From positions 2,852,001 through 2,916,000 of the forward strand of contig JBLDXI010000003.1 in NCBI GenBank assembly GCA_047495785.1: DNA of 64,000 nt. Reading direction: 5' to 3'. Numbering within the stretch: the stretch's first letter is position 1; every line of letters starts with the position of its first letter. The stretch is from Lepidodermella squamata. Its lineage: Eukaryota > Animalia > Gastrotricha. Positions 12,356 through 64,000 of the stretch are shown one piece after another. The position numbers were made by a program, and so were the translations under genes. Below the pieces are notes generated by a model that searched no databases, was not told where the DNA came from, and saw nothing but the letters and a program-made list of their open reading frames with translations.

Positions 12356-12437
12356 GATTAACGCATTCACACCGAGGTGAAACAAACAGGAAACGAATAA
12401 ATTAAAATTTGGGTTCGAGCGGTTTCAAATTGATGAC
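12356..12437 (+). promoter_or_regulatory. Conserved ~80-bp upstream element of the ALF-like genes, copy 1 of 3 (others at ~13824-13907 and ~14363-14443)
   Basis: Shared core (G)GAT(T)AAC(C)GCATTCAC...(C/G)AGGAAACGAATAAATTA...GGTTC(G/A)AGCGGT...AAATTGA(T/C)GAC lies upstream of both ALF-like ORFs and the relic ATG. The regulatory role is inferred. Confidence 0.55.
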
Positions 12438-12629
12438 CAGGGAGAGAAAATGACAGATTTACCGCAACGAATGCTAATTCATGCATGAATATCGTGTATA
12501 AGCGGCTCTTTTCCCCCACTGATTTCCTGAACTTCGAACCACTTTTTTCTGGTTTTAATGAGCGAGTATTAAGAGTGTACCTATTTCTTTTTATTTCGGT
12601 TTAAAGCCGGTGAATTCAATCAAATCAGC

Positions 12630-13046
12630 ATGAAGTTTTCAAGCCTGGCAGCCAGCTGCATCGTAGTCGCTCTGGCTATAAATTCATTCGTCAAAGCCGA
12701 CGAACTCGGCTCCATAGTCATGCCCTGCTTTCATAGCAACTGGGCTCAATGTGCCCTACAAGTTGGCGGGTTGGTTTTCAAGCTCCACAACTGGTCTGAC
12801 GGCGTTCCACACGATATTGGCGGTTACAGCTGCACCGGCAGCTACAAGGGACAGTTCAGAAAGTTCAAATGGGTTTGGGACGGCAGGTTCGAGTGCCCGC
12901 AGATAAGCTATGATATTACTGGCTATTCACGTGGGCTGAAGAGTCGAAGCGGCGCTGTTAAGCATGCTATCAATGATTATATTCAAAAGTTGGGCGAATC
13001 TGGACGAATGACGGATGAAGAGTGGCGAAATTTGGTTAAAGCTTAG
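12630..13046 (+). CDS. ALF: Anti-lipopolysaccharide factor (ALF)-like secreted protein, intronless, 138 aa
   Basis: Signal peptide. C-x20-C cationic/aromatic loop CTGSYKGQFRKFKWVWDGRFEC, followed by P...ITGYSRG-x-KSRSGAVKHAINDYIQK, matching the recalled ALF layout (C-x20-C-PGW...G....RS-x-SG....A..DFV-x-K). Extra N-terminal C-x7-C. Confidence 0.85.
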   Translation: MKFSSLAASCIVVALAINSFVKADELGSIVMPCFHSNWAQCALQVGGLVFKLHNWSDGVPHDIGGYSCTGSYKGQFRKFKWVWDGRFECPQISYDITGYSRGLKSRSGAVKHAINDYIQKLGESGRMTDEEWRNLVKA

Positions 13047-13640
13047 TAAAACGATTGATGGCTTGTTAGACTCAAGCATGGCCTAGCCTTGATGGAACAC
13101 TGAACGGTTATTTCCCTAAACAAATATCGATTTCACTCTGAGGTACTTATACCTTGATCAAAATTCAAGGACATTAAAAGAGTGAAAATTTGAAAATAGA
13201 CGCCTTATGATCTTTCATTTGAGCCAACGGCAGGCGGCGTTTGGTTTGAAATGAAAACTGAAGGCTAGATTTCAGCTAGTAATATTCATTTCTGAAGGTG
13301 TTTGCATAGCCAAGATTGTTGTCCTAGACTCAACCTCGGCGTCACAATTTCGAATGCAACAATGTAATGAATTTTATTGAGATGCATAATAAATAATTTG
13401 AAATATCCCGTGTCTTTTTTTTATTTCATAAGATTTATAAGAAAACGCGCTTATAAGCCATAGAGAACCATGGAGAGCCCAAGCCCTAAGACGAAGAAGA
13501 GATGTCGATAATAAACGCGATTTCGATGTTCTGTACGTCATTCCTTTGACGTGCAGAGGGGTATCTTACGAGAGGTTGAAAGGTCCAGGCCATAACACCC
13601 GAAATAACCACGGGGGAGGGGTCGGGAAATGCCCCATAGA

Positions 13641-13792
13641 CATAGCGAAGTACGGGGAGGGAGGGATGGGGGAATGAGGGGTATCGCACCCCCAGTTCGC
13701 AAGGCCAAAGTGGAAAATCCCAAAAAAAACCTCAGGGGTCATACAATTTGGGCCCGAAAATACCCCCTAGTACCCCCCTACTTCGCGCACTG
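13641..13792. mobile_element. hAT-like MITE with 8-bp TSD; related copy at 27161-27527
   Basis: Ends CATAGCGAAGTA.../...TACTTCGCGCACTG. Flanks CCCATAGA (13633-13640) and CCCATAAA (13793-13800) match at 7/8. Internal similarity to 27161-27527. Confidence 0.65.
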
Positions 13793-13823
13793 CCCATAAA
13801 CCCTACTAGCTACTTTGTACACT

Positions 13824-14200
13824 GGATTAACGCATTCACGCCGAATGAAAAAACAAGAGGAAACGAATAAATTAACATTTCGGTTCAAGCGGTGTCAAAT
13901 TGACGACGGATTAGCCGCGTTCAATGCAATGGTCCGAGACTCGGTCCAGCTCTCAGGGGATAAAAGTTGTTTGGAGTAAAAAATTAGCAAATCCCCCTTA
14001 CGTTTTTCAAGAAAATTTCGATGGCAGGAACAGGGGTCTTTTTTTCCTTCCCACCCACTGCAGCCTCTTTTCTATCTTTTCTATCCCTTATCAAATGCTG
14101 TTTATAACCTCAAAACTTCTCCTTCGTGGGAATATATTATCAAGAATACTTTGTTATTTTGGCTTACAGTTGATGATTTATGCCAATCAGCATGAAGTGG
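13824..14200 (+). pseudogene. Truncated ALF-like relic: upstream element, 5' leader and start codon, with no ALF coding body
   Basis: Second copy of the upstream element, then AATCAGC-ATGAAG at 14185-14197, the same context as the 12630 ALF start. Downstream sequence loses ALF similarity. Confidence 0.55.
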
Positions 14201-14807
14201 GCAACTCCCAGTTTAACCGGATTTCATCATTGCATAATATAATGATTAACACTACATGTTATGAAGTTCAGAGGAAGTGGAGGTATCGTGGGGTCGCGAG
14301 GTCCAGCCAAGAAAGCCCGAAATAATCACAGGGCGAGACACGGCACAACACTGTACAACACTGGATAACCGCATTCACGTCGATGAAAAAAACAGGAAAC
14401 GAATAAATTACCATTTCGGTTCAAGCGGTGTTAAATTGATGACGAATTTGCCGCTACCAACTCTGTCCAGCTCTCCGGGAGGTAAATCGAGCTATTTCGA
14501 GCCAAAAAGATGCAGATCGTAGGTGGAACCCTTACATTTTTTTCAGAAAATTCGAAAATTTCGACCTTAAGAAGGAGGAGGGGGGTCGTTTTTCTTTCCC
14601 ACTCCTTTCACCCTTCTTCCATGTACTCGGAATACTGGAATAATATCGATTTTGCTGATTCAGTCATTTCATTAACCATTTGCCAGTTGCCAGTAGCAAA
14701 TGCCGGTTAGAACCTCAAAAACTTTTTATTTCTGGGAACAAATGATGAAGAATGCCTGAGTAATTCTTGTTATTTCGATTTATAGCCGGTGATTTTAGCC
14801 ACTCAAC

Positions 14808-15227
14808 ATGAAATTTTCAAGCTTTGCAGCTGGCTGCATCCTTGTCGCCCTCCTTGTCGCAAGTCCTTTCGTTAAAACCAATAACATCGGCTTCATAGTC
14901 CAACCATGCTTTCATCAAAACTGGGCTCGATGTGCACTACAAGTTGGCGGGGTGATTTACAAGCTCCACAACTGGTATGACGGCGTGCCACATGATATTG
15001 GCGGTTACAGTTGCACCGGAAGCTTCAAGGGACGTTTCCGCAAGTTCAAATGGGTTTGGGACGGCAGGTTTGAGTGCCCGCAGATTAGCTATGATATTAT
15101 CGGCTATTCACGCGGGCTGGAGAGTCGAAGTGGCGCTGTTAAGCATGCAATCAATGATTTCATTCAGAAATTGGGCGAATCAGGAAAAATGTCAAAAGAA
15201 GAGTGGCAAAATTTGGTCAATGCTTAG
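14808..15227 (+). CDS. ALF: ALF-like secreted protein, intronless, 139 aa; tandem paralog of 12630-13046
   Basis: Signal peptide MKFSSFAAGCILVALLVA, C-x7-C (CFHQNWARC) and C-x20-C loop CTGSFKGRFRKFKWVWDGRFEC. Highly similar to the 12630 ORF. Confidence 0.85.
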   Translation: MKFSSFAAGCILVALLVASPFVKTNNIGFIVQPCFHQNWARCALQVGGVIYKLHNWYDGVPHDIGGYSCTGSFKGRFRKFKWVWDGRFECPQISYDIIGYSRGLESRSGAVKHAINDFIQKLGESGKMSKEEWQNLVNA

Positions 15228-15824
15228 AAAAACTGGTAAGACTCAGAGCGTGAACCCGCACTGCTGATAACACTTTTTGATGTGGGACTTTATATGCATT
15301 TGTTACTGAAAATTATCCTAGGTACCTCGGTCGAAATTCGAGGGAATTATGAAAGTGACGATTTTAGAATAAACGCAGGATGATCTTCGACAAGATTCGT
15401 TGAACAGGATAAATCTGTGACCGAACTGAAACTAAATTGTACTTGAACTTGTGCGATAATTTGGCGATTTTTGCCTTTGGCGATAATTTGGCAAGCGAAA
15501 TCGGAGCTGCTTCCATCCTACTGTTTATCAATGAATTCGCTTTTTAGCGGAAATTGAAAAATTGACGAATGTTCAAACATCGACATTCATAATATTGCAC
15601 ATTTTTCTGTTTTTATCTGAGAAGAGTCGTATTTGATTAAAACAGCCAGCCGAAGCGCTACGGGGTATCATACAAATGCGAGATGCAAGTAAAAGATAGA
15701 AAAAATGAAGATGTAGAGGCCAAGGGAAAGCAGACACATCTCACATTAGTTTACCATTCCATAGTTTCTAAATGTCTAGAATTCAGTGCAACTTTAGTAG
15801 ATCATTGATTAGAATAAACGAATG

Positions 15825-18521
15825 TCATTGATTGATAATGCGAATGCAGTATACGTGAATTCCGATAAAAACCGCTGCCGCGACCAGAAACACGATAACA
15901 TCCAACAATCGAACATTGTTGATTCGTGTCTTCCAAGACCGACGTTCAGCCCAACCCGTGCCAGCTAGGAGACAAGCCAAAAGGTGGTACGTTGTGATAA
16001 ATGCTGTGAAGAAACTCGTGACTCTGATGTAATCCCCCAACAAGATACCGTTGGAACTCTTCGGCAGCTGGCTCAAAACGTCGGATTGGGCGACTGTAAG
16101 TGCAAGTAGGGTGGTGATAGCGAAATTGGGTCTATCGGGGGCTTCCGGTGGCATAAGGAACGTCGCTAAATCCAAAACAGCGAGCAAAGCACTGGGCGTA
16201 ACAAGGTTGATGATGTAATAGTCCGGAATCCTCTTCAATTCAGCAGAATAGACAACGACGTGAACTGATTGTCCTTTGAATTCTCGAGTTCCAAATTTTA
16301 CGTCAGACGACACCCATTTCCACTCAGGGGTGAGACGATCTCTCCACGAAAACAAGGCCCAATTTTCATCGAATCTTATAACACCCGACGATCGGGCGAG
16401 TTCAAAAGTGAACCTGCACGTCTGTTTATCAAACGGGAACAGGGTAAGATCCAAGTTACAAACCGATCTGAAAATTCCCTCTTTCGTCCAATAGAAGTCG
16501 AACGTACGGTTCATATCGCCAGGCGTTGCAGTTACAGTCAAATCGTCCCCGAAATGATCAGCATAACTATTCTCCAAGAATAGATTCCCGGTAGCGGTGC
16601 TTGTAAATCTGATTTTAGGAACCCAAACTTTTTCAGGGGATGGTACGTATAGTAGATCAGATCGCTTAGTTATCGCAGTGGTGCTGTTCAAGGGGCATGT
16701 CGTTACGTTCCAAGACAAAAGCAGCAGGCCATTGACTTCAATTTCCTGATCAACGGTGTTGATGCCGTTAAGCGAATTCACATCGAAGGCGATTTTCACA
16801 ATATTAGGCTGACCGTTGTTCGGAGGTACAGATAAATCGGCTATGAAGTCTTCGCACTCTTTCATGGCTTTTTCAACCTTCTCGGGTGTTGTCGAATCGG
16901 GTGGCATCTTAGGAATGGCGATTGACATAACTGAGGGCACGTTTTCACCCCGCTTTGTCATAACCAGTTGCGGTGCCGTAGTCATAGGGGGGTCAGTTTT
17001 TTGTGTAATTGGACTGAAGCTGGAAGTCGACGGAGATGTAGTTGGTGATATTGGTGAAGATGTTGTGGTGGAGGCGGTAGATGTAGCCACAGAAGAAGTC
17101 GATGTTTGGGGTAGAGTTGTCGATCTGAATGATTTCCAATTCTCGCAAGCACCTGGTAGTTGTTTAATTTCGGCCACAGGCAGTGCTGAGCTGTATAGGA
17201 ATACGCATGCCATGGCAAGTGAGTCGAACTGTCCGGTAATTATTCTGCCAATGGTCAGCATACTTCCAGTGGTGAAATCTGACCGCGACACGTTGTATGC
17301 CCCAATTAACTGGGCGTCAGTACCCGCATATAAGCTACCCATTGAAGTCGAGACGTTATAAGTAAATGCAATGAAATGCCAGTTATCGGTGGTTGCATTA
17401 TAGTTCAACTCATTTGTACCCTGCTCTAATGTCCAGTATTGTATTCTGTCCGGGGAGCGGAATAAAATACTGAAAAATTCCTGATTTTTTCTGATGATCG
17501 AACCAAGTACTCCTACTACCTCCGTTGACTGCTGACTACCGAAATAGGCGTAGAACGCATATGTTATCGAACTCGCAAATTCGGGATATGCCGTCGCAAT
17601 TTGCCTTACTATCGGTCGATGGGAGGAGCTCAATGCACCGAACGGACCCTTCAGGTCTTCAACGACCGTTCCAAGGTACCAGTAGCTCCCATAGCCGTCT
17701 ATCTGCGTGTCCTTTGCAACGTCCTGGACATACGAAAATTCATCGAGAGGCAAAAACATTTCAAGGCTATCTGGACTAGGCCAGTTGCGGGTTGGCGAAA
17801 CAAGCGGTTTTAATTTCCAGTCGCGGCAAACCGCCCGTAATTGACGGAACTCCAACTTATAGGAGGGTACCGAGAAACGCATGACACAAGCCATTGAGTC
17901 AGCTGGAGCGAGCGTGAATCCGGGGCTACCCTGGCCTAGTATAAGAACTTCACTTTCGTTCAACTTGATATTCACAGAGAAAGCTTTAAAGGTCTCCTGG
18001 CTTTCTCCAACATAGATCGTTACGGTTCCATATGAATAGGTTAGTGCGATGAAGTTCCATTTACCAGGTACAGCTGCGATAGTACCAATAACGCCTGCAG
18101 TTCTCGCAAGTTCTATATTTGATGTGGATTTCACATAGTTTACAGAGAACATATTATTATCAGTAGAGGATGAGTGTACGAGCAATCCTCTCCTATCCGC
18201 CTGTTCGTTGGCATCAGGGAAAAAGTAGAAAGAAAGCGAAAAATCCACACTGAACTTGGATTTCACGGAGCAGATCTGCGAGCCATTAATCCGATAAGAT
18301 GTCTTAGGCAAGCCGAAGGGGCCGTCAATGCTTGTTTGCAACTCACCATATTCTTTCCCGTCGGATCCTCCCCCTGTAATAGCGATGCCCTTTGCAACAT
18401 CGGCGAGGCCTGCTGTTTCATCCATCGGGAGGAAAAATTGCAGGTCCTTTTGTTTTGGCCAGTAAGCCCAAGACGTATCCATTGTCAAAAATAGTTGCGC
18501 GAATAATACGAGCATTATCAT
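15825..18521 (-). CDS. Cys-loop ligand-gated ion channel subunit with two N-terminal LamG/pentraxin-like domains and a Ser/Thr stalk, intronless, 898 aa (copy 1)
   Basis: First ATG at 18521 gives signal peptide MIMLVLFAQLFLTMDTSWA (the ORF-track start is a GTG). Two repeats of FLP(M/L)DE...DVAK...GPFG...W(N/H)FIA(L/F)TY...(I/L)Y(V/A)G, then a T/S/P-rich linker. Loop A VWVPKI, Cys-loop CNLDLTLFPFDKQTC (C-x13-C with FPFD), four TM helices with a ~20-aa M3-M4 loop. Confidence 0.9.
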   Translation of the reverse strand: MIMLVLFAQLFLTMDTSWAYWPKQKDLQFFLPMDETAGLADVAKGIAITGGGSDGKEYGELQTSIDGPFGLPKTSYRINGSQICSVKSKFSVDFSLSFYFFPDANEQADRRGLLVHSSSTDNNMFSVNYVKSTSNIELARTAGVIGTIAAVPGKWNFIALTYSYGTVTIYVGESQETFKAFSVNIKLNESEVLILGQGSPGFTLAPADSMACVMRFSVPSYKLEFRQLRAVCRDWKLKPLVSPTRNWPSPDSLEMFLPLDEFSYVQDVAKDTQIDGYGSYWYLGTVVEDLKGPFGALSSSHRPIVRQIATAYPEFASSITYAFYAYFGSQQSTEVVGVLGSIIRKNQEFFSILFRSPDRIQYWTLEQGTNELNYNATTDNWHFIAFTYNVSTSMGSLYAGTDAQLIGAYNVSRSDFTTGSMLTIGRIITGQFDSLAMACVFLYSSALPVAEIKQLPGACENWKSFRSTTLPQTSTSSVATSTASTTTSSPISPTTSPSTSSFSPITQKTDPPMTTAPQLVMTKRGENVPSVMSIAIPKMPPDSTTPEKVEKAMKECEDFIADLSVPPNNGQPNIVKIAFDVNSLNGINTVDQEIEVNGLLLLSWNVTTCPLNSTTAITKRSDLLYVPSPEKVWVPKIRFTSTATGNLFLENSYADHFGDDLTVTATPGDMNRTFDFYWTKEGIFRSVCNLDLTLFPFDKQTCRFTFELARSSGVIRFDENWALFSWRDRLTPEWKWVSSDVKFGTREFKGQSVHVVVYSAELKRIPDYYIINLVTPSALLAVLDLATFLMPPEAPDRPNFAITTLLALTVAQSDVLSQLPKSSNGILLGDYIRVTSFFTAFITTYHLLACLLAGTGWAERRSWKTRINNVRLLDVIVFLVAAAVFIGIHVYCIRIINQ

Positions 18522-19545
18522 TATTGTCGATTTCGCAAACCGAAGTAAGAGGTTAAATTTTTCTGATCGAATCGAGCAGCTAAAAAGGGCTTGTCTTAAA
18601 ATAGTCAGGTTTTTTGTGTGACTGCGATTGGCTCGGATATCCTCTAGCCTGCGAATTTTTAATTTTTGCGGTTTTATTGCTGATTTTTCAATTATTGCCA
18701 CATGATGTCATGGATGAAAAGCGAGGGATCTAATATGGTTTGAGTTCCTGCCAAAACAAGCGAATAGCGTGAAATGAATGAATTGAAATCACCAACACGT
18801 TTCAATAGTTGCGTTCCTCCTATTCTTCCGACTAGAAATTGAAGTTTTATTCATTTCATTACGGTAATTCAATTTAATTTTATAAAGTTTCAACGGGCAA
18901 TGGATCATGCCTTTTGCTTTTTGCTCTTTACTTTCTATTCGCCAGGTAAAAAATGGTGGTGCTTTATTAGCTTGATTTCTTCAAAAGGCTCTTGTAATAA
19001 GTCTGAGCATTTGCTCTGATGCCACGGTGGCATTCAACACATCGACCAGAAGGCTTTACCGATTGTTACTTGAGCAGCCATATGGGCTGCGCTATACGTA
19101 TTTACCTTCGCATTCTGTCAATAAAGTGCCGCCGCCAAACTTTAATTTGGATTCTGAAAATTAAAAAATCCACGCGTAACCTCGTCAAATTCGATATTTA
19201 CGAAGAACGTTTTTTTTGTATCTACCATTACATATGGAAACTGTGAGTTGCAGCTATAGAATGTTTCCGAAGTTAACCTCATAAAAAAGGGCTGAAAGGA
19301 AAGTAGCTTATTAGAAGCTAAAATAATGAACAAATAATCGAAATTCTATTCGGGCGTTCAATTTTCAACAGCTTTGTTAAAAACGGATATTGTTCGCCCA
19401 GCATTTTAGATGCGAATTCCAATTAATCCAAGGCCGCAATTAGAGAAGAACCATGGTATAAATGAAGTGAGATTTTTGTTCCAAATCATCAGCCATCCCT
19501 CGCTTTTCCATTTCCTAATCAATTTTTATTCATCTCATCCCCAAC

Positions 19546-20035
19546 ATGCGTGCTTTCTTGGCAATTGCAGCTGTCGTCCTTCTCGGCCTTGGTATAACCT
19601 ATTAATCAATTTTGCCGATAACTTGAACTTCCTTATTTTATTATTTCAGCCTACTCCGAGGCTAAGGTGTGGAACGTCGAGTCGAAGGAAATGCACCGGC
19701 ACTACGAGAAGAAGGTGAGCACCTCGGCGAGCCGCTCCTTCGAGAACAAGAGGGCTTTCCGCAAGGGACGTGCCTTCCCGATGAAGAAGCGCCACGGCAA
19801 GAAGATGAACAAGCGCCGCGGATCCTTCTCCAAGTCGGTCTCCAAGTCTGTTTCCTACTCGCGGTCCGCCTCGTTCTCCGGCAACCGCTTCGGCAACAAC
19901 AAGCGATTCGGTGGTCGCAAGTTCGGCAAGCACGGCAAGAACTTCGGCTACGGCCGCAAGGGCGGCAAGTTCGGCGGCCGCAAGGCCAACAAGGGCTCGT
20001 ACTCATTCAGCAAGTCCGTCAGCATCTCCAACTAA
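19546..20035 (+). CDS. Secreted highly basic K/R/G/F/S-rich protein, 143 aa (family copy A)
   Basis: Exon 1 19546-19591 (46 nt), GT-AG intron 19592-19649, exon 2 19650-20035. Signal peptide MRAFLAIAAVVLLGLAYSEA, TATA box at ~19457, AATAAA downstream, strong AAG/CGC/GGC/TTC codon bias. Confidence 0.88.
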
Positions 20036-20928
20036 GTCAAAACGCAAAATTCTAAATTAAAACTTATATGTAATCTGAATCAGTCGTATATTGTATTCGC
20101 TTTCTGTGAATAAAATCGCGATATAGAATATAGGTATTCAATCCTAGTTTCAGTCGAATTTCTAAATTTTAGTTGAATAAGTTTCGTTTTCCCACGTTGA
20201 CAACGTGTGCCTAATATACTGATGCATTGAAAAATTGTCATTTTTTTCTCTTATTTTTACAAAAAACTTCATGCTCCAAAATGAATCAAAACAATACGCT
20301 TAATAGCAAATAATATTTATTTATTTGACTTGCAATTGATCGAACGATCGGTAGCAATTCGAATGGATCAATGATCATCAGCGTATAGAACATAGAACCC
20401 ACGTTACACAACAAAAGTTTAACAAAAGTGGTCACAAAATTCAAACGCCAATTTTTTTTCATCAGCCGGTTATTATCTATGTTATGAGTTCGAATGACCT
20501 GAGGATCAATTTGCGAGAAAACATAATTAAAATGTACAGCATGATGGTCATAAAAAATCAAAATACGAAGTTACAATATCTCAAAAAATAAAAGTGATCT
20601 TTTAGGTTAAGGGTCAAGGATTATTGTCCTCGTCCGTTGAGTTTCTGTTTCAAACGAATGTGAGACGGAAAACAGTGCGAAAACGAAATGAACTAGCAGG
20701 GGCGACTTCTAAAAACAATGCTTTTCACCCGTGACTCGCGATATAGGTGCAAAAAATTCTGGCTGCGCTGTAATTCGGTCGAACACGCGACCAACCTCTC
20801 CACTACGCAATACGTTTTAGGTGAAAAATTGGCCAGTCAGGCTATAAAAAGTGTAATAAAAATGGATAAATATCATTCAAGCTTGCTTATCATTTATTCC
20901 GATTATCTGTTCAAATTCGAAACTAACA

Positions 20929-21655
20929 ATGCGTTTAACTCTCGTCGCAGCAGTTGTCGCTCTATTCTGCATCGGTAAATGCCTTTTTCCAACATGTCAT
21001 TTCATTCAAACTGTTTTTGTCTATAGTTGCCACTTCAGCAAAGGATGTTTCAGTCTCGGCTAATAAGAGGGGAGCATCTGCGTCCGCTGGCATCGACAAG
21101 GTTCAACGTGGCGGTCTGATTGGCCGCAAACACGGCAAACAGGGCAAACACGGCAAACACGGAAAGCACGCATTTGGTCGCCATCGTGGCGGTAAACTTT
21201 CCTCTGTCGGAAACCTCCACGGCCGTCGTGGTCATGGCAAGTTCATTGGCCGTCGTCACGGTGGTCGTCGCAGCAGTGGCAACTTTGCTTCCGTCTCCCT
21301 CAACGAGCGATCTGCCTCTGCTGCCGCTGGCAACCGCCGCGGTCGTCGCGGTCACGGTATCTCCTTCGGTGGTCGTCGTCATGGTGGTCGTCGCGGCGGA
21401 GACTTTGCCTTTGCTTCGGTAAACAAGCGATCTGCTTCAGCTGCTGCTGCCGGCAACTTCAAGGGTCGCCGTGGGATCTTCGGCAAGAACGACAGCCACA
21501 AAAAAGGCAAGAAGGCTGCGAAGAAGGCCGGCAAGAAGACCGGAAAGAAGGAAGGCAAGAAAGCTGGCAAGAAGGAAGGCAAGAAGGGTCGCAAGGGAAC
21601 TGGAAAGAAGGCCGACAAAGCGCATGGTATCATAATCCCTAATGAGGGTCATTGA
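20929..21655 (+). CDS. Secreted G/R/H/K-rich protein with KKxGKK C-terminal repeats, 224 aa (divergent family member)
   Basis: Exon 1 20929-20974 (46 nt, phase 1), exon 2 21027-21655. Signal peptide MRLTLVAAVVALFCIVATSA, TATAAAA at ~20843. Repeats GKHGKH, GGRRHGGRR, ASVN(K/E)RSASAAA and KKEGKK. Confidence 0.85.
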
Positions 21656-22706
21656 TTTAGCGACTTTACATGTTAGCCTGATGCATATTCATCAATGTGG
21701 CCTGGTATCAATTATTTGATGAACTATATTTGATTTTTACTAATTTAAAGAATAAGATGTTATTTCTGATAATATTTTTGGGGTTCGATATTCGATGAAA
21801 TAAAAATGTTCAGTTAAACTGCCAGCTCCTTGTTTTTTTCGTCATCTGTTCACTGAAATCAACGATCTTGGTTAGCCACTGCAAATTCATTGCGCTTCAA
21901 CTACCTAAATAGTAGAATTTCTGGGCGCGCGCTGATTGGTCAATCGATCGTTATCATCAGTCGTGCGATCCATAACATTTCTTGCAATAAGTGCAATATA
22001 TTATTATGCTACGATTACTTTACTACGATTTACGCTTGGTTTATGGTCAATGGAAACCGTGCAGAGGGCGTGGCAAGGTCATTTTTACATTAGTAGAAAC
22101 TAATTTTCTAGTGGATCGCACGACAAAATTGTTTCATCCCTGAGTTATAGCAGCGATAAATTGACCAATCATCGCGCAGGTCAAAGTGCTACTTACTACT
22201 TGTAACCGCAGCGATCGAGTTTTCTGTTTTTTGAGATAAGGGTGAAAGCACCAGTAGCTCATGGATTTCAGAGAACGCAACGGTTGTTTAACGGGAAATG
22301 AGAAATGAGAGCCGCGTCTCGTATAGGTCGCACCATATTTGCTGAACAATGACTAAGCAGCCGCCTTCCCTCTTCCCTTGTTTGGTCGATGAATTAAAAT
22401 TAAATAGAGACAGAGTTTTATCAATCACGCACTCTGCTCACGCAAGTTGAAACAGATGCATTTATTCTAAGCGTTTATATGAACATTGGAGTTTGATTTG
22501 AAGCAAAGCTGAAAGCAGCTAACATCATCACAGATTTCACATTAAGAAAATCAAAATGATCCACATCCCACAAGAAAGAAGCTTAACGAAAGAATGGTAG
22601 GCAAAGGTTCACAACGTATAAGAATAAACAATGTGTATTTGTCTTGAATTTCGCGTAATCCAGATCAATTTGTGTCGTTGAATAAAGCCGACAGTACAAG
22701 CAACAT

Positions 22707-25460
22707 TCATTGGTTAATGAGTCGAATGAAGTAAACGTGTATTCCGATGAAAATTGCTGCCGCAACCAGAAACATGATAACATCGAATAGTCGAATATTG
22801 CTGATTCCTCTCTTCCATGGTGGGCGTTCAGCCCAATCTGTGCCGGCAAGGAGACAAGCCAGCAGATGATACGATGTAATAAACGCCGCGAAGAAACTCG
22901 TAACCCTAATGTAATCCCCCAGCAGAATTCCGTCAGATTTCTTAGGCAGCAGGCTCAGAACATCGGATTGGGCTACTGTTAGCGCTAATAGGGTCGTGAT
23001 AGCGAAATTCGGCCTATCGGGAGCATCTGGTGGTAGGAGGAACGTCCCCAAATCTAGAACAGCCAGCAATGCACTGGGCATAACAAGGTTGATGATGTAA
23101 TAATCGGGGATTCTCTTCAATTCAACAGTATAGATAGCGGTATGAACTGGCTGGCCTTTGAAATCATTAGCTCCGTACTGAACGTTAGATGAAAGCCACT
23201 TCCATTCAGGGGTTAAGCGATCCCTCCACGAAAATATAGCCAGGCTCTCATCGAACCTTACAACACTCGATGATCGGATGAGTTCGAATGTAAAGCTGCA
23301 GGTTTGCTTATCAAATGGAAAGAGGGTAAGATCCAAGCTGCAGACTGATCGGAAAATTCCTTCGCTTGTCCAGTAGAAGTTGAAGTTACGCATCTTCTCA
23401 ATCGGCGTTGTAGTTACCGTCAGATCTTTCCCAAAGTGATCAGAATAACTGTTCTCCATGAAGCGATTCCCAGTCGAAGTGCTCGTGAACCTGAGTTTTG
23501 GAACCCAAACTTTGTCAGGAGAAGCAACGTAAAGTAATTCGGTTCGCCTTGTAAGGACTGTGGTGCTGTTCAAAGGGCACGTTGTTACGTTCCAAGACAA
23601 AAGCAACAACCCATCGACTTGGATTTCCTCCTCCACGTTATCTATTCCGCTTAGTGTATTCACTTCAAAGGCAATGGTCACTATAGTTGGCTGGCCGTTG
23701 TTTGGAGGGACGGAGAGATCGGCCGAAAAGTCGTCGCACTCTTTCATAGCTTCTTCAAGAAGTTGCGGCGTAGTTGTTTCGACTGGCATCTTGGGAATGA
23801 TGCTCGACACAAATGACGAGACTTCCTCTTTTCTCTTAGATAACGCCAGTTGCGGTGCCATAGTCGTCGGTGGATCAGTTTTTTGAATAGTTGGACTATA
23901 GCCGATGGTGGTAGTCGACGAAGAACCAACACTTGTTGAAGGTGAGTCCGAGCTTGTAGTGGTGGGTTTAATTGTTGAGGAGGATGAACTAGTAGCCACT
24001 GAAGTAGTCGATGTTGTAGGAAGTGTCGTAGTTTGAAATGATTTCCAGTTTTCGCATGCGTCTTGTAGCGATTTGATTTCTTCCTTCGACAGAACAGCGC
24101 TGTAATAGTACACGCAAGCCATGGCAATCGAGTTGCTGAAATCAGCAGTGGCATCAAGTCCGCCGTACATATCTGCAATAGCCAGTGCCATTCCAATGGA
24201 AAAATCAGTCTGTGGTAGGCTATAGTTTCCCATAAGTTTGACATCACTGCCGTAGTACATATTGGCCATCGAAGTCCCTCCGTCGTAAGTAACAGCGAAA
24301 AATTGCCAACTATCATTCGCCGCGATCCGATGAGAAAAGAAGGCGCCTTTCTCAGCGGTATAATACTGTATCTGATCCGGCACGATGAAATACACCTCGA
24401 AAAAACTTTTTTCTTTGGTGTTGATAAACATTCCCAATCCTCTTTTTGGCGTGGTTGATTGGCTACCAATGTAAACATAGCCAGTAAAGGTCATTGAACC
24501 GGTAAAGCTAGGATATGTAACTCCGATTTTGTTCCCAACTGGTCGATGCGATGAGCTTGGAGCACCGAAAGGTCCTTTTAGATCTTCAAGCACAACCCCA
24601 AGGTAGCCGTTATTAACAGCGCTGTCGATACGTGTCTGGTTAGCCACGTCTATAACATAAGAATAATCATCCAGTGGCAGAAACAACTCGAGACTTTCGG
24701 GTTTTGGCCAGTTACGAGATGGAGTGACTAGCGCTTTCGATTTCCAATCGCGGCAAACCGCTGGGAGCTGGCCTAGCTCCAGCTTTGCAAGCCCTAGATT
24801 GTAGAGCATTACGCAAGCCATTGAGTCACCTGGGGCTAGCTTGTATCCAGAGCTACCCTGGCCTAACGTTAAAGCATCAGCTTGGTCCAAACTTGGAGTA
24901 GCGCTATAATGTGCTTCTTTTTGCTGTTTGTCTCCCACGTAGATGTTTATCTTACCCAAATCATGGGTTAGAGCAATGAAGTTCCATTTTCCAGGTTCGA
25001 CCGCAATAGTACCGATACTTCCTGCAGAGCTCGCGATCTCTAGGCTCGATTTCACATAATCCACCGATAAAATATTCAGAGCAGAGGAAGATGAGAATAA
25101 AACTATCCCTCTCTGAGCCATCTGGTCGTTAGCATCGGGAAAAAAATAGAAAGAAAGCGAAAAATCCAAGCTGAATTTAGATTTAACAGAGCAAATCTGC
25201 GAGCCATTGATTCGGTACGAAGTCCTCGGTAGTTCAAAGGGGCCGTTAATGCTTGTTTGTAATATGCCGTACTCTTTCCCGGTGGGTCCCCCGCCTGAAA
25301 TAAGTGTACCCTTCGCTACATCGGTAAGGGCTGCTGTCTCGTCCATAGGAAGGAAGAAATTCAAGTCTCGCTGCTGCCTAGGCCAGTAGGCCCATGACGT
25401 GCTAACCAGCAGAAATGCCAGCAGCGTCGTGGATAAAGGACTCGTGCAAAACAAATTCAT
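22707..25460 (-). CDS. LamG-LamG-S/T stalk-Cys-loop channel subunit, intronless, 917 aa (copy 2)
   Basis: Signal peptide ending STSWA-YWP, the same two LamG-like repeats, Cys-loop CSLDLTLFPFDKQTC, and M1-M4 as in copy 1. Confidence 0.9.
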   Translation of the reverse strand: MNLFCTSPLSTTLLAFLLVSTSWAYWPRQQRDLNFFLPMDETAALTDVAKGTLISGGGPTGKEYGILQTSINGPFELPRTSYRINGSQICSVKSKFSLDFSLSFYFFPDANDQMAQRGIVLFSSSSALNILSVDYVKSSLEIASSAGSIGTIAVEPGKWNFIALTHDLGKINIYVGDKQQKEAHYSATPSLDQADALTLGQGSSGYKLAPGDSMACVMLYNLGLAKLELGQLPAVCRDWKSKALVTPSRNWPKPESLELFLPLDDYSYVIDVANQTRIDSAVNNGYLGVVLEDLKGPFGAPSSSHRPVGNKIGVTYPSFTGSMTFTGYVYIGSQSTTPKRGLGMFINTKEKSFFEVYFIVPDQIQYYTAEKGAFFSHRIAANDSWQFFAVTYDGGTSMANMYYGSDVKLMGNYSLPQTDFSIGMALAIADMYGGLDATADFSNSIAMACVYYYSAVLSKEEIKSLQDACENWKSFQTTTLPTTSTTSVATSSSSSTIKPTTTSSDSPSTSVGSSSTTTIGYSPTIQKTDPPTTMAPQLALSKRKEEVSSFVSSIIPKMPVETTTPQLLEEAMKECDDFSADLSVPPNNGQPTIVTIAFEVNTLSGIDNVEEEIQVDGLLLLSWNVTTCPLNSTTVLTRRTELLYVASPDKVWVPKLRFTSTSTGNRFMENSYSDHFGKDLTVTTTPIEKMRNFNFYWTSEGIFRSVCSLDLTLFPFDKQTCSFTFELIRSSSVVRFDESLAIFSWRDRLTPEWKWLSSNVQYGANDFKGQPVHTAIYTVELKRIPDYYIINLVMPSALLAVLDLGTFLLPPDAPDRPNFAITTLLALTVAQSDVLSLLPKKSDGILLGDYIRVTSFFAAFITSYHLLACLLAGTDWAERPPWKRGISNIRLFDVIMFLVAAAIFIGIHVYFIRLINQ

Positions 25461-26396
25461 CTCCGCTACAACTTTGTATGAAAGAATTTGGTCTATGTTC
25501 AGATAGGAGAAGCCGCTTATAAAAACCTCATAAAACTTTGCTTCTGTTTGTTCTGAAATGCTATGTTTGACTCGCTGTCTCGCCTCCGCATTTGTTATTG
25601 CCGATTCGCAGTCAATCTCATTTGATTATTTTTTGTTTTGTTTGAATCCCGTGATTTTCGTCGACAGAATTAATAACCAATGAGAAACTGGGAGACATAG
25701 TTAGCGTTATTATTTTATGATCTTAACGAAATATCAGATGTTACATCATATTTCATAGCCTAATTGTGTTTCATTGTGTCGAAATTAATTTCTCTAACAC
25801 GAGAGTCATAAGATTGTTACGGTCTCCAATCGGCTGATTATTTACCTGCGACCGCAGTCCTCGTTTCTCGCTTTAGAAAGGATAACTGAAGGCTTAAGGC
25901 TTCAGCTGAAAAGGTTCATTCCTGAAGGTGATACTATTGCTCGGATTTTTGCTATAGACTCGTTCCTGGCGTAAAGTAATGCTGTAATATCCGTCATCCG
26001 TGAATCGAAACAAACAATCTGATAATATTTATGGAGATGTAGAATCGATCCTTAGCTATGTCCTGCGTGTCGTGTGTGTATAATTTGTCGAAAACTATGA
26101 GTAAATTTCAGCTTCCCTTTATTGGTAACTAGGAAAAGACTTCGTGACTTGCAATGATTGTGGTTGGCATGTAGAAATTAAAAATCTTATTCGTTGAATG
26201 TTCAATATCATTATTGCCTACAGACATTGTTCGCCAATTAGTCTATGCGCGAATTGAAAATGATCCAATTAAGAACGCAATTGGAGATCACAGTGAACCC
26301 TGCTGGTATAAAGGCAGCGAAATTGTTGTTCCAAATCATCAGCCATCCCTCGCTTTTCCATTCTCTAATCAATTATTTATTCATCTCATTCTAAAC

Positions 26397-26903
26397 ATGC
26401 GTGCTTTCCTCGCCATTGCTGTTGTCGTCCTGCTCGGACTCGGTAAACTATTTACCTACAAAATTGTGTCAATAGCCTAACCCTCCCTATCATATTTTTC
26501 AGCCTACTCCGAGGCTAAGGTGTGGAATGTCGAGTCGAAGGAAATGCACCGCCACTACGAGAAGAAGGTGAGCACCTCGGCGAGCCGCTCCTTCGAGAAC
26601 AAGAGGGCTTTCCGCAAGGGACGTGCCTTCCCGATAAAGAAGCGCCACGGCAAGAAGATGAACAAGCGCCGCGGATCCTTCTCCAAGTCGGTCTCCAAGT
26701 CTGTTTCCTACTCGCGGTCCGCCTCCTTCTCCGGCAACCGCTTCGGCAAGAACAAGCGATTCGGTGGTCGCAAGTTCGGCAAGCACGGCAAGAACTTCGG
26801 CTACGGCCGCAAGGGCGGCAAGTTCGGCCACGGCAAGTTCGGCGGTCGCAAGGCCAACAAGGGCTCGTACTCCTTCAGCAAGTCCGTCAGCATCTCCAAC
26901 TAA
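26397..26903 (+). CDS. Secreted highly basic K/R/G/F/S-rich protein, 148 aa (family copy B)
   Basis: Exon 1 26397-26442, intron 26443-26502, exon 2 26503-26903. Near-identical to copy A plus an extra HGKFG unit. TATA box at ~26308. Confidence 0.88.
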
Positions 26904-27160
26904 GGGATAAACTTGAATCACTAAATTATAACTATTGAACTACATGATTTTTGAATAAAATCCTGATAAGTTCAACATGCAATCCACGTTTTGGTCGAAT
27001 TTTATACCTTTAAGGTTGTCATTTTGGGAAGTTTATTATGGTTTAAACACATTTCAAGTTTTTTTTTTAAATCGCGTAAGTTCTTTTTCACTTCCTTAAT
27101 CAAAACTGTTAACAGCGATTTCGAATAGTTCGAATGAATGTAAAGACAATTGAGAGTTCT

Positions 27161-27527
27161 CAGTGCAGGAAGTACGGGGAATGGGGGTTATCGTATCCCC
27201 ATCTCGCAAGGTCAAAGTGAAAAACTACAAAAAACCGCATTGTCAGGGAAACATCAAGACTTGGCCAGGCACTACTCTATACTTTATTGTGAATGAATCG
27301 AACATTGAGGATCTGCCATTCATGGCCTTAAATATCATATAGAAATAACTAGAGCGAACATGGCATTGCCTAATTGATGATCACATGACACATGATTATT
27401 ATCACAAGCTAGTTATTTCGATGGCACGATGCCAGCCAGCAGATCCTTACACACATGGATGACCACTTGGTCATAGAATTTGGTCCCGAAAATACCCACC
27501 AGTTCGAGGATCCTACTTAGCGCGCTG
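27161..27527. mobile_element. hAT-like MITE, same family as 13641-13792
   Basis: Ends CAGTGCAGGAAGTA.../...TACTTAGCGCGCTG. Shares TCGCAAGG(T/C)CAAAGTG and AATTTGG(T/G)CCCGAAAATACCC with the 13.6-kb copy. Imperfect flanks AGAGTTCT/AGTGTTCT. Confidence 0.55.
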
Positions 27528-27969
27528 CAGTGTTCTGCCTACTTGACTCTTTCATTTTGTTATAATTTATATATTCAATATATATGTTCAGAACTTACAA
27601 GCGTATTGCTTTGTTAGCGTCTCAGTTCGCTTGACAAGGCTATCTTCTTCCCTCTCGTATTGTTATCGATAACAGCCCGTTTTCCGAAATTGATTTAATA
27701 CGCAAACAATAGAAACCTATTCAAACATTATGACAAAGTCAACATTCATCGCCCGAGTTCCATGAACATCGAGTTTTATTCCAAACGAGCCTTCACATCG
27801 AAACTGTCAGTAGCGCAGCTAGTGTAGGCTTAGAAGGTTGGTTGTAAAAGCAAAGGAGAAAAAATGAAATGAAATAAGCAGGAGTGATAAATAGATTTGC
27901 CATAATTATTCTACAAAAACAATTAAAAATTGTTCCGAATAAGTTTTTATTTAATGGTAAAAACCAACA

Positions 27970-34518: not shown

Positions 34519-35288
34519 TTAGTTGGAGACGCTGACGGACTTGCTGACGGAGTACGAGCCCTTGTTGGCCTTGTGACCGCCGAAATTGTGGCCCCACTTG
34601 TTTCCGAAATTATGGCCATACTTGTTTCCGAACTTGTGGCCGTATTCGTTTCCAAAGTTGTGGCCGTAGTCATTTCCGAAATTGTGTCCGTACTTGTTTC
34701 CGAACTTGTGGCCCCATTTGTTGCGGAAATTGTGGCCGTAGTTGTTGCCGAAGTTGTGGCCCCACTTGCCGCCCTTCTTGCCGTGCTTGCCGTATTTGCG
34801 AGCACCGAATCGGTTGTTGCGCTTGCCATGACGAGCACCCGAGAACGAGGCGGACCTGGAGAAGGAGACAGACTTGGAGACCGACTTGTTCTTGCCGTGC
34901 TTGCCGAACTTGTGACCACCGAATCGCTTGTTCTTGCGGTTGCCGGAGAACGAGGCGGACCGCGAGTAGGAAACAGATTTGGAGACCGACTTGGAGAAGG
35001 ATCCGCGGCGCTTGTTCATCTTGCGGCCGAACTTCTTGCCACCGTGGCGCTTCTTCGGGGCGTAGCCACCCTTCTTAACGAAACCTGCGTTGTTTTCGTA
35101 CGATCGGCTGACCGAGAGGCTGGTTTTCTTCGAGTAGCGGCGGTTCAGCTCTTTCGACTCGAACTTGTTAACCGTCGCATCGGCATAAGCTGACGGGGAA
35201 TAAAAAGGTTGACCTCGATCATCACTTGACCTAATTACTTACCGATGCAAATGAGGGCGAGAGCGGCGATAGCGAGACAAGCGCGCAT
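34519..35288 (-). CDS. Secreted basic protein with 8 tandem (K/N/D/E)(W/Y)GH(N/K)F(G/R)N octapeptides, 238 aa (long family member)
   Basis: Exon 1 35288-35243 (46 nt), exon 2 35189-34519. Signal peptide MRACLAIAALALICIAYADA. Shares KMNKRRGSFSKSVSKSVSYSRSASFSGN and the C-terminal KANKGSYS-x-SKSVS-x-SN with copies A-C. Confidence 0.88.
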
Positions 35289-61850: not shown

Positions 61851-62354
61851 ATGTTTCTTGCTTTAGCGATTTTCGGCATTTTTTGCCTGTTCGCCTCGAC
61901 GGAATCGGCCTCAGTAAATGTAGTCCCGTGCATTCAACAAAACTGGGTTCAATGTGGGATCGCCCTGGGAACAGCTGTTTTCAAACTTCATCAATGGTCG
62001 GATGGAGTGCCGTATAAGGTTGCATCTTACGATTGTACTGCTAGGTACAAGGGCAGAATCAGCAAGCTGAAATGGGTCTGGGATGGGGAGTTCAATTGCC
62101 CGAGCTTATGGCCGGGTCACACCGGCAATTCACGAGGTTATGCCAGCCGAACTGGAGCGATCGAACATGCGATGCAAGATTTCTACAAAGATTTAACGGC
62201 TGCGAATGTTCTGACCCAGGAACAGTGGGACCAAATGGCACCTGGGGTTGTGAGACCTGTTACTACGACTGTTTCAGACACTACGAAGGCTATTACACAG
62301 GCGACTAGATTGCCGAGAGAGGATATACCTCGAAGAGGAGGAATTATACCGTAA
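61851..62354 (+). CDS. ALF: ALF-like secreted protein with a Thr-rich C-terminal extension, intronless, 167 aa
   Basis: Signal peptide MFLALAIFGIFCLFASTESA, CIQQNWVQC, C-x20-C loop CTARYKGRISKLKWVWDGEFNC, SRGYASRTGAIEHAMQDF, and an extra ~35-aa tail. Confidence 0.83.
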   Translation: MFLALAIFGIFCLFASTESASVNVVPCIQQNWVQCGIALGTAVFKLHQWSDGVPYKVASYDCTARYKGRISKLKWVWDGEFNCPSLWPGHTGNSRGYASRTGAIEHAMQDFYKDLTAANVLTQEQWDQMAPGVVRPVTTTVSDTTKAITQATRLPREDIPRRGGIIP

Positions 62355-62607: not shown

Positions 62608-63110
62608 CTAGTTGGAGACGCTGACGGACTTGCTGAAGGAGTACGAGCCCTTGTTGGCCTTGCGGCCGCCGAACTTGCCGTGGCCGAACTTGCCGCCCTT
62701 GCGGCCGTAGCCGAAGTTCTTGCCGTGCTTGCCGAACTTGCGACCACCGAATCGCTTGTTGTTGCCGAAGCGATTGCCGGAGAACGAGGCGGACCGCGAG
62801 TAGGAAACAGACTTGGAGACCGACTTGGAGAAGGATCCGCGGCGCTTGTTCATCTTCTTGCCGTGGCGCTTCTTCATCGGGAAGGCACGTCCCTTGCGGA
62901 AAGCCCTCTTGTTCTCGAAGGAGCGGCTCGCCGAGGTGCTCACCTTCTTCTCGTAGTGCCGATGCATTTCCTTCGACTCGACATTCCACACCTTAGCCTC
63001 GGAGTAGGCTGAAAAAGATGATAGGGTTAGGCTATTGACATAATTTTGTAGGTGAATAGTTTACCAAGTCCGAGCAGGACGACAACAGCAATGGCGAGGA
63101 AAGCACGCAT
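62608..63110 (-). CDS. Secreted highly basic K/R/G/F/S-rich protein, 148 aa (family copy C)
   Basis: Exon 1 63110-63065, intron 63064-63009, exon 2 63008-62608. Near-identical to copy B including the leader and intron. TATA box at ~63196-63202. Confidence 0.88.
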
Positions 63111-64000
63111 GTTTAGAATGAGATGAATAAATAATTGATTAGGAAATGGAAAAGCGAGGGATGGCTGATGATTTTTCTTGTGTTCTTTTGCCACTTTTAT
63201 ATCGTGATATTCGCACTTGTAATTGTATTCTTAATTGGCATAGTTCGAAAAAATAGCCAATTATTTCGATCGGAAATTCGCATCTGAAATTCCAAGCGAG
63301 TATTCCCCATTGATAGTTAGAATATTGAAAATTGTAAAACAAAGTGAAATAATTTAATATTAAGATATCCCGCAAATTTTTCAATTAATAATTCAAAATT
63401 AATATTGCCACTGGATAAAAATATTTGTTGTTGTTGTCAAGAACCTCAGATTACAGATTATACCGTGTTTTAGAATAACTCAACGCCGATTTTACATCGA
63501 ATATCGCAACTTTTTCAAACCAATTTCGGCATGAACTTTACTTGGCACGTATGCTACAGACTCCATCTCCTCGAATTTGAAAATTGTTGTTCTTTTTACT
63601 AACGGCACTACCAGCTGATCGAGTTTGCAAGCCACGAGATTTTCAGCGTTAATTTTGAGATTCTCGGAATTAGGAGACCTCGAGTGGTATGGCACCTTGA
63701 TTTAAAAAAAAAATCGCCATTTGAAACTATGAGGATTCAACTATAATAGATGGCGAAAAAGGCGAATGAATTGCTATTAGCTGAACGTTTATTTCATTTC
63801 ACCAAATCTCAAAAATATGACCAGAAATATCAGACTGCTCATCACAGCTTGGCATGGCAAAATAAATTTAATTTTCTAAGTCTGCCGATCTTGAGCCAAC
63901 ATGCTGACCTAGTCTTGAGGATTAGTAGGTGTAGGCGTCATCTCCATGCGCCGCTTCAGGGTTAATAACGCCGTGCGCCTTGTCACCCTTCTTGCCGCCC

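Follow-up and report, generated by a model that had tools for sequence, protein, structure and literature searches.

Three intronless ALF-like genes at the locus

The 64,000-nucleotide stretch of Lepidodermella squamata DNA analysed here (the window; contig JBLDXI010000003.1, positions 2,852,001 to 2,916,000) contains three genes, called copies 1 to 3, for predicted secreted proteins that resemble anti-lipopolysaccharide factors (ALFs). ALFs are well-studied antimicrobial proteins that neutralise lipopolysaccharide (LPS) and have been proposed for use against sepsis. Each copy is a complete open reading frame (ORF; Table 1). An earlier reading made from the nucleotide letters alone (the sequence-only reading) had described three secreted proteins with a C-x20-C loop and a following SR(S/T)GA..HA..D(Y/F) helix; the ORFs lie exactly where it placed them, and translation confirmed these motifs as well as the Thr-rich tail that it had noted in one copy, here copy 3. 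The extra N-terminal C-x7-C (PCxxxNWxxC) that it had reported as conserved was recovered in all three copies by alignment and translation.

Amino acid identity to copy 1 is 80% for copy 2 and 45% for copy 3 in the alignment of the three window copies. Residues C33, N37, W38, C41, C68, W83-D84-G85, C89 and P90 are invariant, as are S100-R101-G102, G108-A109, H112-A113 and D116, and an SRxGA..HA..D helix follows the C-x20-C segment in all three proteins, whose isoelectric points (pI) are about 9. In copy 1, the C-x20-C hairpin corresponds to the hairpin through which ALFs bind LPS.

None of the three genes has a coding intron, as had been claimed, but the claim of an intron-rich neighbourhood needs qualifying: the immediate neighbours at 15825-30747 are three long single-ORF genes, so that the lack of introns is nothing unusual locally. 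A small gene beside copy 3 does have an intron of ~58 nt.

Table 1. Features of the ALF-like genes and their surroundings; positions are those of the window unless a contig is named.
Feature	Position	Strand	Description
ALF-like copy 1	12630..13046	+	single uninterrupted ATG-to-stop ORF, 138 aa; PF11630 47.8 bits
Copy 1 predicted signal peptide	about 12630-12698	+	hydrophobic signal-like start MKFSSLAASCIVVALAINSFVKA, by translation
Copy 1 probable mRNA	about 12557-13530	+	unbroken contigs of the probable RNA run
Copy 1 C-x7-C motif CFHSNWAQC (C33, C41)	12726..12752	+	by translation; turn between two predicted helices
Copy 1 C-x20-C hairpin CTGSYKGQFRKFKWVWDGRFEC, 22-mer (C68-C89)	12831..12896	+	net charge +3; basic and aromatic residues alternate
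ALF-like copy 2	14808..15227	+	complete ORF, 139 aa; PF11630 45.9 bits; tandem duplicate of copy 1
Copy 2 C-x7-C motif CFHQNWARC	14907-14933	+	by translation
Copy 2 hairpin	15012-15077	+	by translation
ALF-like copy 3	61851..62354	+	complete ORF, 167 aa; PF11630 37.8 bits
Copy 3 C-x7-C motif CIQQNWVQC	61929-61955	+	by translation
Copy 3 hairpin	62034-62099	+	by translation
Copy 3 Thr-rich tail VVRPVTTTVSDTTKAITQAT...	62247-62351	+	by translation
Upstream 69-nt element, duplicated with gene	12380..12448; 14386-14454	+	direct-repeat family D2, 75-90% identity
Orphan copy of 69-nt element	13850-13918	+	direct-repeat family D2; no gene behind it
Divergent seventh ALF-like gene	C54:3158215-3158661	-	signal-peptide exon MASLIGLFLLTLAATKSNNPM.., ~66-nt intron, second exon
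Convergent neighbour of copy 3	62608..63111	-	secreted, very basic Gly/Lys/Ser/His-rich protein; two exons, signal-peptide exon, ~58-nt GT..AG intron
Further Gly/Lys/Ser/His-rich family members	19667-20035, 26520-26903, about 34888-35163
Three LamG/Cys-loop receptor paralogues	15825-18701, 22707-25460, 27970-30747	-	single ORFs, 917-958 aa

Profile and structural matches to ALFs

All three proteins exceed the gathering score of 25 bits of the Pfam family PF11630 (anti-LPS factor/scygonadin), at 37.8-47.8 bits, with E-values of 1.8e-12, 6.8e-12 and 2.3e-09 for copies 1, 2 and 3. In a phmmer search of the PDB sequences, shrimp ALFPm3 (2JOB) was matched with E 0.011 and the synthetic ALF hairpin 24-mer 2MDL weakly, with E 0.9. 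The copy 1 hairpin can be aligned both with the ALFPm3 loop of 2JOB and with the 24-mer, and its loop is as long as the one in ALFPm3.

A first AlphaFold model, built with six sequences, was mediocre (predicted local distance difference test score, pLDDT, 65), and its sole significant Foldseek match was already 2JOB (E 8.6e-5). A second model of copy 1, built with 44 homologues, reached a pLDDT of 86.3 and consists of the signal helix, helices at residues 23-34 and 38-52, four strands within residues 59-103, of which 66-77 and 80-89 form the hairpin, and helices at 106-124 and 129-137. Foldseek gave 2JOB as the sole significant match of this model too (E 6e-4, TM-score 0.62 by target), and VIA ranked it first (Z 9.1, root-mean-square deviation 2.6 Å over 80 residues), with folds like the double-stranded RNA-binding domain next at Z <=7.9. 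The VIA alignment covers model residues 57-138 only, and the N-terminal helical region of the model was not superposed on the N-terminal helix of 2JOB. The arthropod ALF cluster is the closest both in shape, in the ESM-Atlas, and in language-model features (0.94); bacterial entries returned by the shape search had TM-scores <0.45 and were rejected as not credible. The ALF-type layout of the LPS-binding domain claimed for these proteins is upheld by the PF11630 profile, the reciprocal profile search and the predicted fold, and the homology of the three proteins to ALFs is, from profile and model together, well supported.

A seven-gene family copied at the DNA level

Three queries, copy 1, PF11630 and a profile of 44 sequences, were run against the 121-Mb genome assembly, and each yielded an identical set of seven loci: six four-Cys copies on the contig of the window (C3, 2.86-3.29 Mb) and a divergent seventh copy on contig C54. 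An hmmsearch of about 27.5 kb of C3 some 1.5 Mb upstream (about 1343000-1370500) detected no family member, and the six copies are the only matches on this contig. The PF11630 cut-off was passed at six loci genome-wide. The count of three copies in the sequence-only reading is correct for intact genes in the window but falls short of the family total of six four-Cys genes and one divergent gene. The C-x20-C segment is present in 6 of 6 four-Cys copies, with hairpin net charges of +1 to +4. The seventh copy lacks the N-terminal cysteine pair and is the only family member in this genome with an intron (GTGAGT..TTTATAG), located directly behind the signal peptide; it entered the sequence comparisons by its second exon alone.

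Among the six copies, the ratio of nonsynonymous to synonymous divergence (dN/dS) is 0.19-0.40 in all pairs with measurable dS, and dS ranges from 0.15 to saturation; copies 1 and 2 differ with dN/dS 0.27 and dS 0.49. Because of these values, the duplicates are taken to be old and constrained, with purifying selection acting on the six copies as estimated from their coding sequences. A maximum-likelihood tree supports two groups, one of copies 1 and 2 and the other of copies 3 to 6, in which copy 3 joins the three copies outside the window (SH-aLRT 95).

Copies 1 and 2 form a tandem duplication with a 2181-nt period (coding repeat D1), and a 69-nt upstream element was duplicated along with the gene. 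An orphan copy of this element lies between the two genes; a degenerate third gene behind it was considered and rejected, since neither tblastn nor blastn found a remnant there. Each of copies 3 to 6 has a convergent partner gene that encodes a secreted basic Gly/Lys/Ser/His-rich protein, so that these copies were dispersed as segments of two genes. The family was enlarged by duplication of DNA, both in tandem and in segments. The ALF-like genes have a GC content of 0.47-0.49 and a third-position GC content (GC3) of 0.47-0.56, both of which match the neighbouring host genes, and no A-runs that would represent encoded A-tails were seen behind them.

Probable transcription of copies 1 and 2

Expression was assessed from a single public run of 2015, the type of which was guessed to be RNA, by reading contig depth over copies 1 and 2. 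Depth reached 1242 over 12469-13470, which includes copy 1, and 193 over 14807-15307, which includes copy 2, where contigs cover 14806-15335; it was near zero (about 0-14) between the genes and also near zero upstream. The contigs are colinear with the DNA over 12557-13529, with no joint inside copy 1. Both copies appear to be transcribed without splicing, copy 1 with the deeper coverage. A loose contig end raised the possibility of a splice acceptor just before the copy 2 ATG, which was rejected because no AG is present there; the contig concerned is a ~10% divergent variant that is present in the DNA-like run too.

This second version of copy 2 (14539-15130, ~10% divergent) occurs in both public runs and represents either a haplotype of very high divergence or a paralogue missing from the assembly; 221 bp upstream, from 14539 to 14761, are absent from it in the DNA-like run. 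One probable-RNA contig skips 91 nt in the copy 2 3' untranslated region (15231-15323) with the non-canonical ends AC..GG. The shorter side of this joint measures only 21 nt and a canonical GTAAGA..CCTAG pair lies a few bases off; the skip may reflect an intron, an indel or an artefact. A high-copy repeat at 13638-13804, between the first two copies, has a depth of about 3160 in the DNA-like run, as against about 100 around it, and shows many loose contig ends there.

Relatives in other organisms

A word-index protein search with copy 1 returned no relatives; these were found by exhaustive profile search alone. The profile of the six copies, run against 1.84 billion representative proteins, matched 141 relatives at E ≤ 1e-3, of which at least 37 have the N-terminal cysteine motif, and 68 at E ≤ 1e-10. 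Four-Cys proteins are encoded by Rotaria socialis, R. magnacalcarata and Didymodactylos carnosus (P0013, P0157-P0160, P0004, P0148), six-Cys proteins by Rotaria sordida (P0003, P0147), and a two-Cys protein by Brachionus calyciflorus (P0006), which UniProt has automatically named "Anti-lipopolysaccharide factor". A canonical ALF of the isopod Armadillidium nasatum was matched as well (P0098, E 1.2e-7). The remaining matches are to metagenome or Logan contigs that carry no species name. All named four-Cys relatives are from bdelloid rotifers, and all named non-arthropod relatives are from rotifers. Two long metagenome contigs (371 and 308 kb) that were inspected resemble animal DNA, with ASC and PKD channel genes and leucine-rich repeat (LRR) genes. 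No bacterial relatives were found among the 1.84 billion proteins, and PF11630 had no match in 14 reference prokaryotes searched as a control. The genome itself yielded neither the R&R cuticle domain of arthropods nor the collagen N-domain of nematodes, in searches made without a positive-control genome, although PF11630 and HSP70 were detected in it with the same tool; the host is apparently neither an arthropod nor a nematode and, given its rotifer relatives, probably a small rotifer-like invertebrate. Its HSP70 is 73-78% identical to those of named bivalves, arthropods and a tardigrade and up to 83% identical to sequences on contigs that carry no species name, values that are not informative about its affinity. 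The assembly contains no mitochondrial COX1, and a bdelloid spliced-leader pattern of doubtful accuracy had no match.

The KWVWDG segment is the most conserved stretch among the homologues. A C-x3-(N/D/Q)-(W/Y)-x2-C motif is present in 37 of the 94 rows of the family tree (maximum likelihood, 136 columns), including the Rotaria and Didymodactylos proteins. Thr-rich tails recur in some relatives (P0021, P0024). Of the 91 forks of this tree 40 are unresolved, and the isopod ALF is placed, weakly, with two-Cys sequences rather than with the window's copies. Introns are absent from the Brachionus gene (384 nt, two-Cys) and from a Rotaria socialis gene (435 nt, four-Cys), and residues 2-142 of the Didymodactylos protein lie within one exon. 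As far as these sequences indicate, the four-Cys intronless subtype is widespread in rotifer-type public sequences and is not private to this genome.

The profile search also returned long proteins (P0064, P0075, P0079, P0086, P0092, P0106 and P0012) in which the C-terminal half of the ALF-like profile matches 4 to 14 times over. The modules of P0064 lack the hairpin cysteine pair and are separated by acidic linkers, and P0012 has 652 aa with an ALF-like C-terminus. P0080 and P0099 resemble tandem fused crustacean ALFs.

Comparison with known ALF groups

The window's copies share with crustacean and horseshoe-crab ALFs a signal peptide, a single domain of ~100-115 aa, membership of a multigene family, and a basic/aromatic C-x20-C disulfide hairpin with a CP motif after the second cysteine. 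They also share with these ALFs the S-R-x-G-A...D-F helix start and, by comparison with ALFPm3 (2JOB), a four-stranded sheet and two C-terminal helices. They differ from authentic ALFs in an added N-terminal C-x3-(N/D)-W-x2-C pair on a helix-turn-helix, which breaks the two-Cys rule, and in an invariant W-V-W-D-G in the hairpin; sequence identity is only about 20-27%, and they come from a host that does not appear to be an arthropod. Shrimp ALF genes consist of three exons separated by two introns, the first of which lies behind the N-terminal helix (PMC6213531), whereas the coding regions here are uninterrupted. PF11630 is treated as the ALF hallmark, and ALFs are described as having two cysteines (PMC7017220).

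ALF-fold relatives that break the two-Cys rule have been described before, in the penaeid MjALF-E1 group and the crab scygonadins, which their authors placed outside the 'authentic' ALF clade. Penaeids have three-Cys and four-Cys 'ALF-related' peptides (PMC6213531); the extra cysteine of the MjALF-E1 group lies behind the hairpin (..KRCKL.., ..ARCRL..), whereas the added pair is N-terminal here. Scygonadins are anionic and have a 17-residue loop (PMC6213531), as against a 20-residue loop and a pI of about 9 in the window. This added pair, positioned unlike the extra penaeid cysteine, supports the proposal of a distinct ALF subfamily. The proteins of R. socialis, R. magnacalcarata and Didymodactylos agree with the window's copies in four-Cys layout, N-terminal motif and hairpin length. 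The rotifer PF11630 proteins are only 28-38% identical to the window copies, and they include the six-Cys R. sordida and two-Cys Brachionus types; their contigs have 28-35% GC, compared with 42% here.

A review gives ALF homologues from crustaceans only, beside the Limulus factor (PMC10672452), and one Adineta vaga gene with PF11630 has been tabulated without comment (PMC12220480). A literature search returned no description of ALFs in rotifers and none of intronless ALFs.

Proposed function and alternative explanations

Taken together, the copies are genuine, conserved members of the ALF superfamily that are probably expressed and belong to a four-Cys intronless subtype. We consider it likely that they belong to a seven-gene family of secreted proteins, six of them four-Cys, that serves in defence through hairpin-mediated contact with microbial lipids, was duplicated at the DNA level and maintained by selection, and is transcribed at least from copies 1 and 2. 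The proteins would be secreted by way of the predicted signal-like hydrophobic segment at the N-terminus, and the ALF fold presents a 20-residue basic/aromatic hairpin between the two invariant cysteines C68 and C89, which would form a disulfide. A second disulfide, C33-C41, would staple the N-terminal helices; such pairing fits the homologues, because both cysteines occur together in 48 of the 60 whose match extends to the N-terminus. By analogy with ALFs, the hairpin may attach to anionic lipids of microbial surfaces, such as LPS or lipid A, and the proteins may act as antimicrobial or pattern-recognition effectors.

Several observations weigh against this interpretation. The N-terminal disulfide is deduced from cysteine co-occurrence and a predicted model, and the assignment of the probable RNA run to RNA is a guess. 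With a pI of about 7, two of the copies beyond the window are close to neutral, and some hairpins carry a charge of only +1 or +2; the hairpin of ALFPm3 is more basic. In the poorly resolved family tree, the four-Cys type may or may not form a single clade.

The same fold could also do a non-immune job, if the genes encoded secreted structural, reproductive, egg or gland proteins that were co-opted with the neighbouring Gly/Lys-rich proteins. Scygonadin, an ALF relative, is a male reproductive-tract protein. Copies 3 to 6 were co-duplicated with that large secreted basic family (at least 45 matches, GC3 0.90), some copies have a near-neutral pI and little charge on the hairpin, and KWVWDG is more rigidly conserved than expected for a fast-evolving immune effector. 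The hairpin nevertheless retains the ALF length and the basic/aromatic alternation, and no link of the Gly/Lys-rich family to a structural role was found; basic Gly-rich secreted proteins are typical antimicrobial candidates. We therefore regard a non-immune role as improbable.

The origin of the family raises two further alternatives, both of which were suggested by the sequence-only reading. If a spliced ALF mRNA was retroposed long ago in an ancestor and the resulting gene was later copied as DNA, this would be compatible with the defence function proposed above and would account for the intronless coding regions here, in Brachionus and in Rotaria, set against three exons in shrimp. The loci nevertheless show no retrogene hallmarks and no A-tails, promoters and flanks were duplicated with the genes, several neighbouring genes are intronless too, and the seventh copy has an intron just behind the signal peptide. 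Short genes readily lose introns in compact genomes, and introns may have been lost long ago, when the lineage arose, since the Brachionus and Rotaria relatives are also intronless. We judge an old retroposition to be unlikely. For the present copies, recent retroposition was rejected, given the absence of A-runs behind the genes, the upstream DNA duplicated along with them and the co-duplicated neighbours. Horizontal transfer of an intronless copy into the lineage, from bacteria or a crustacean, is suggested by the patchy distribution, with published ALFs from crustaceans and horseshoe crabs and a host that is apparently not an arthropod, and by the rotifer-type coding regions checked, all of which are intronless as opposed to the three exons of shrimp ALFs; bdelloid rotifers are, moreover, known for foreign genes (PMC12220480). 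It is contradicted by the lack of any bacterial relative among the proteins searched, by the animal-type channel and LRR genes on the inspected metagenome contigs and by the host-like GC and GC3 of the window's genes. Two-, four- and six-Cys types are spread across monogonont and bdelloid rotifers at only 25-40% identity, a deep diversification that argues for long residence in the lineage, and the divergent seventh copy has a spliceosomal intron. Acquisition by horizontal transfer is thus highly improbable.

The locus holds a well-kept, probably expressed ALF-fold family in an apparent non-arthropod and so extends the evolutionary range of the family. A broader view, which we put forward only tentatively, is that ALFs are an old protostome defence family and not an arthropod invention, that rotifer-like micro-invertebrates harbour a large, unstudied intronless radiation of two-, four- and six-Cys forms, and that the four-Cys staple alters binding or stability. 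A bolder alternative would explain the patchy distribution by a transfer from animal to animal, between crustaceans and an ancestor of rotifers. The genes are not a new kind of system, and databases already detect the domain automatically. The public sequences recovered by the profile search do reveal a large uncharacterised branch with a putative double disulfide, and the proteins offer new natural hairpin scaffolds for LPS-binding studies, with an invariant KWVWDG core and an extra staple. They are also the first candidate effectors proposed here for the immunity of rotifer-like animals, about which little is known.

Neighbouring genes

The Gly/Lys/Ser/His-rich proteins encoded near the ALF-like genes are ~130 aa long (..GGRKFGKHGKNFGYGRKGGKFGHGKFGGRK..SKSVSVSN), and their copies are 93-99% identical. 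Genome-wide the family gave at least 45 matches, most of them on contig C3, and its genes are interleaved with the ALF-like genes. Their GC3 of 0.90 suggests very high expression, and they could constitute another antimicrobial or structural family.

The three receptor paralogues join a LamG/concanavalin-like domain to the ligand-binding and channel domains of Cys-loop receptors. A word search with a receptor gene returned a 586-aa protein without the LamG part as the sole relative.

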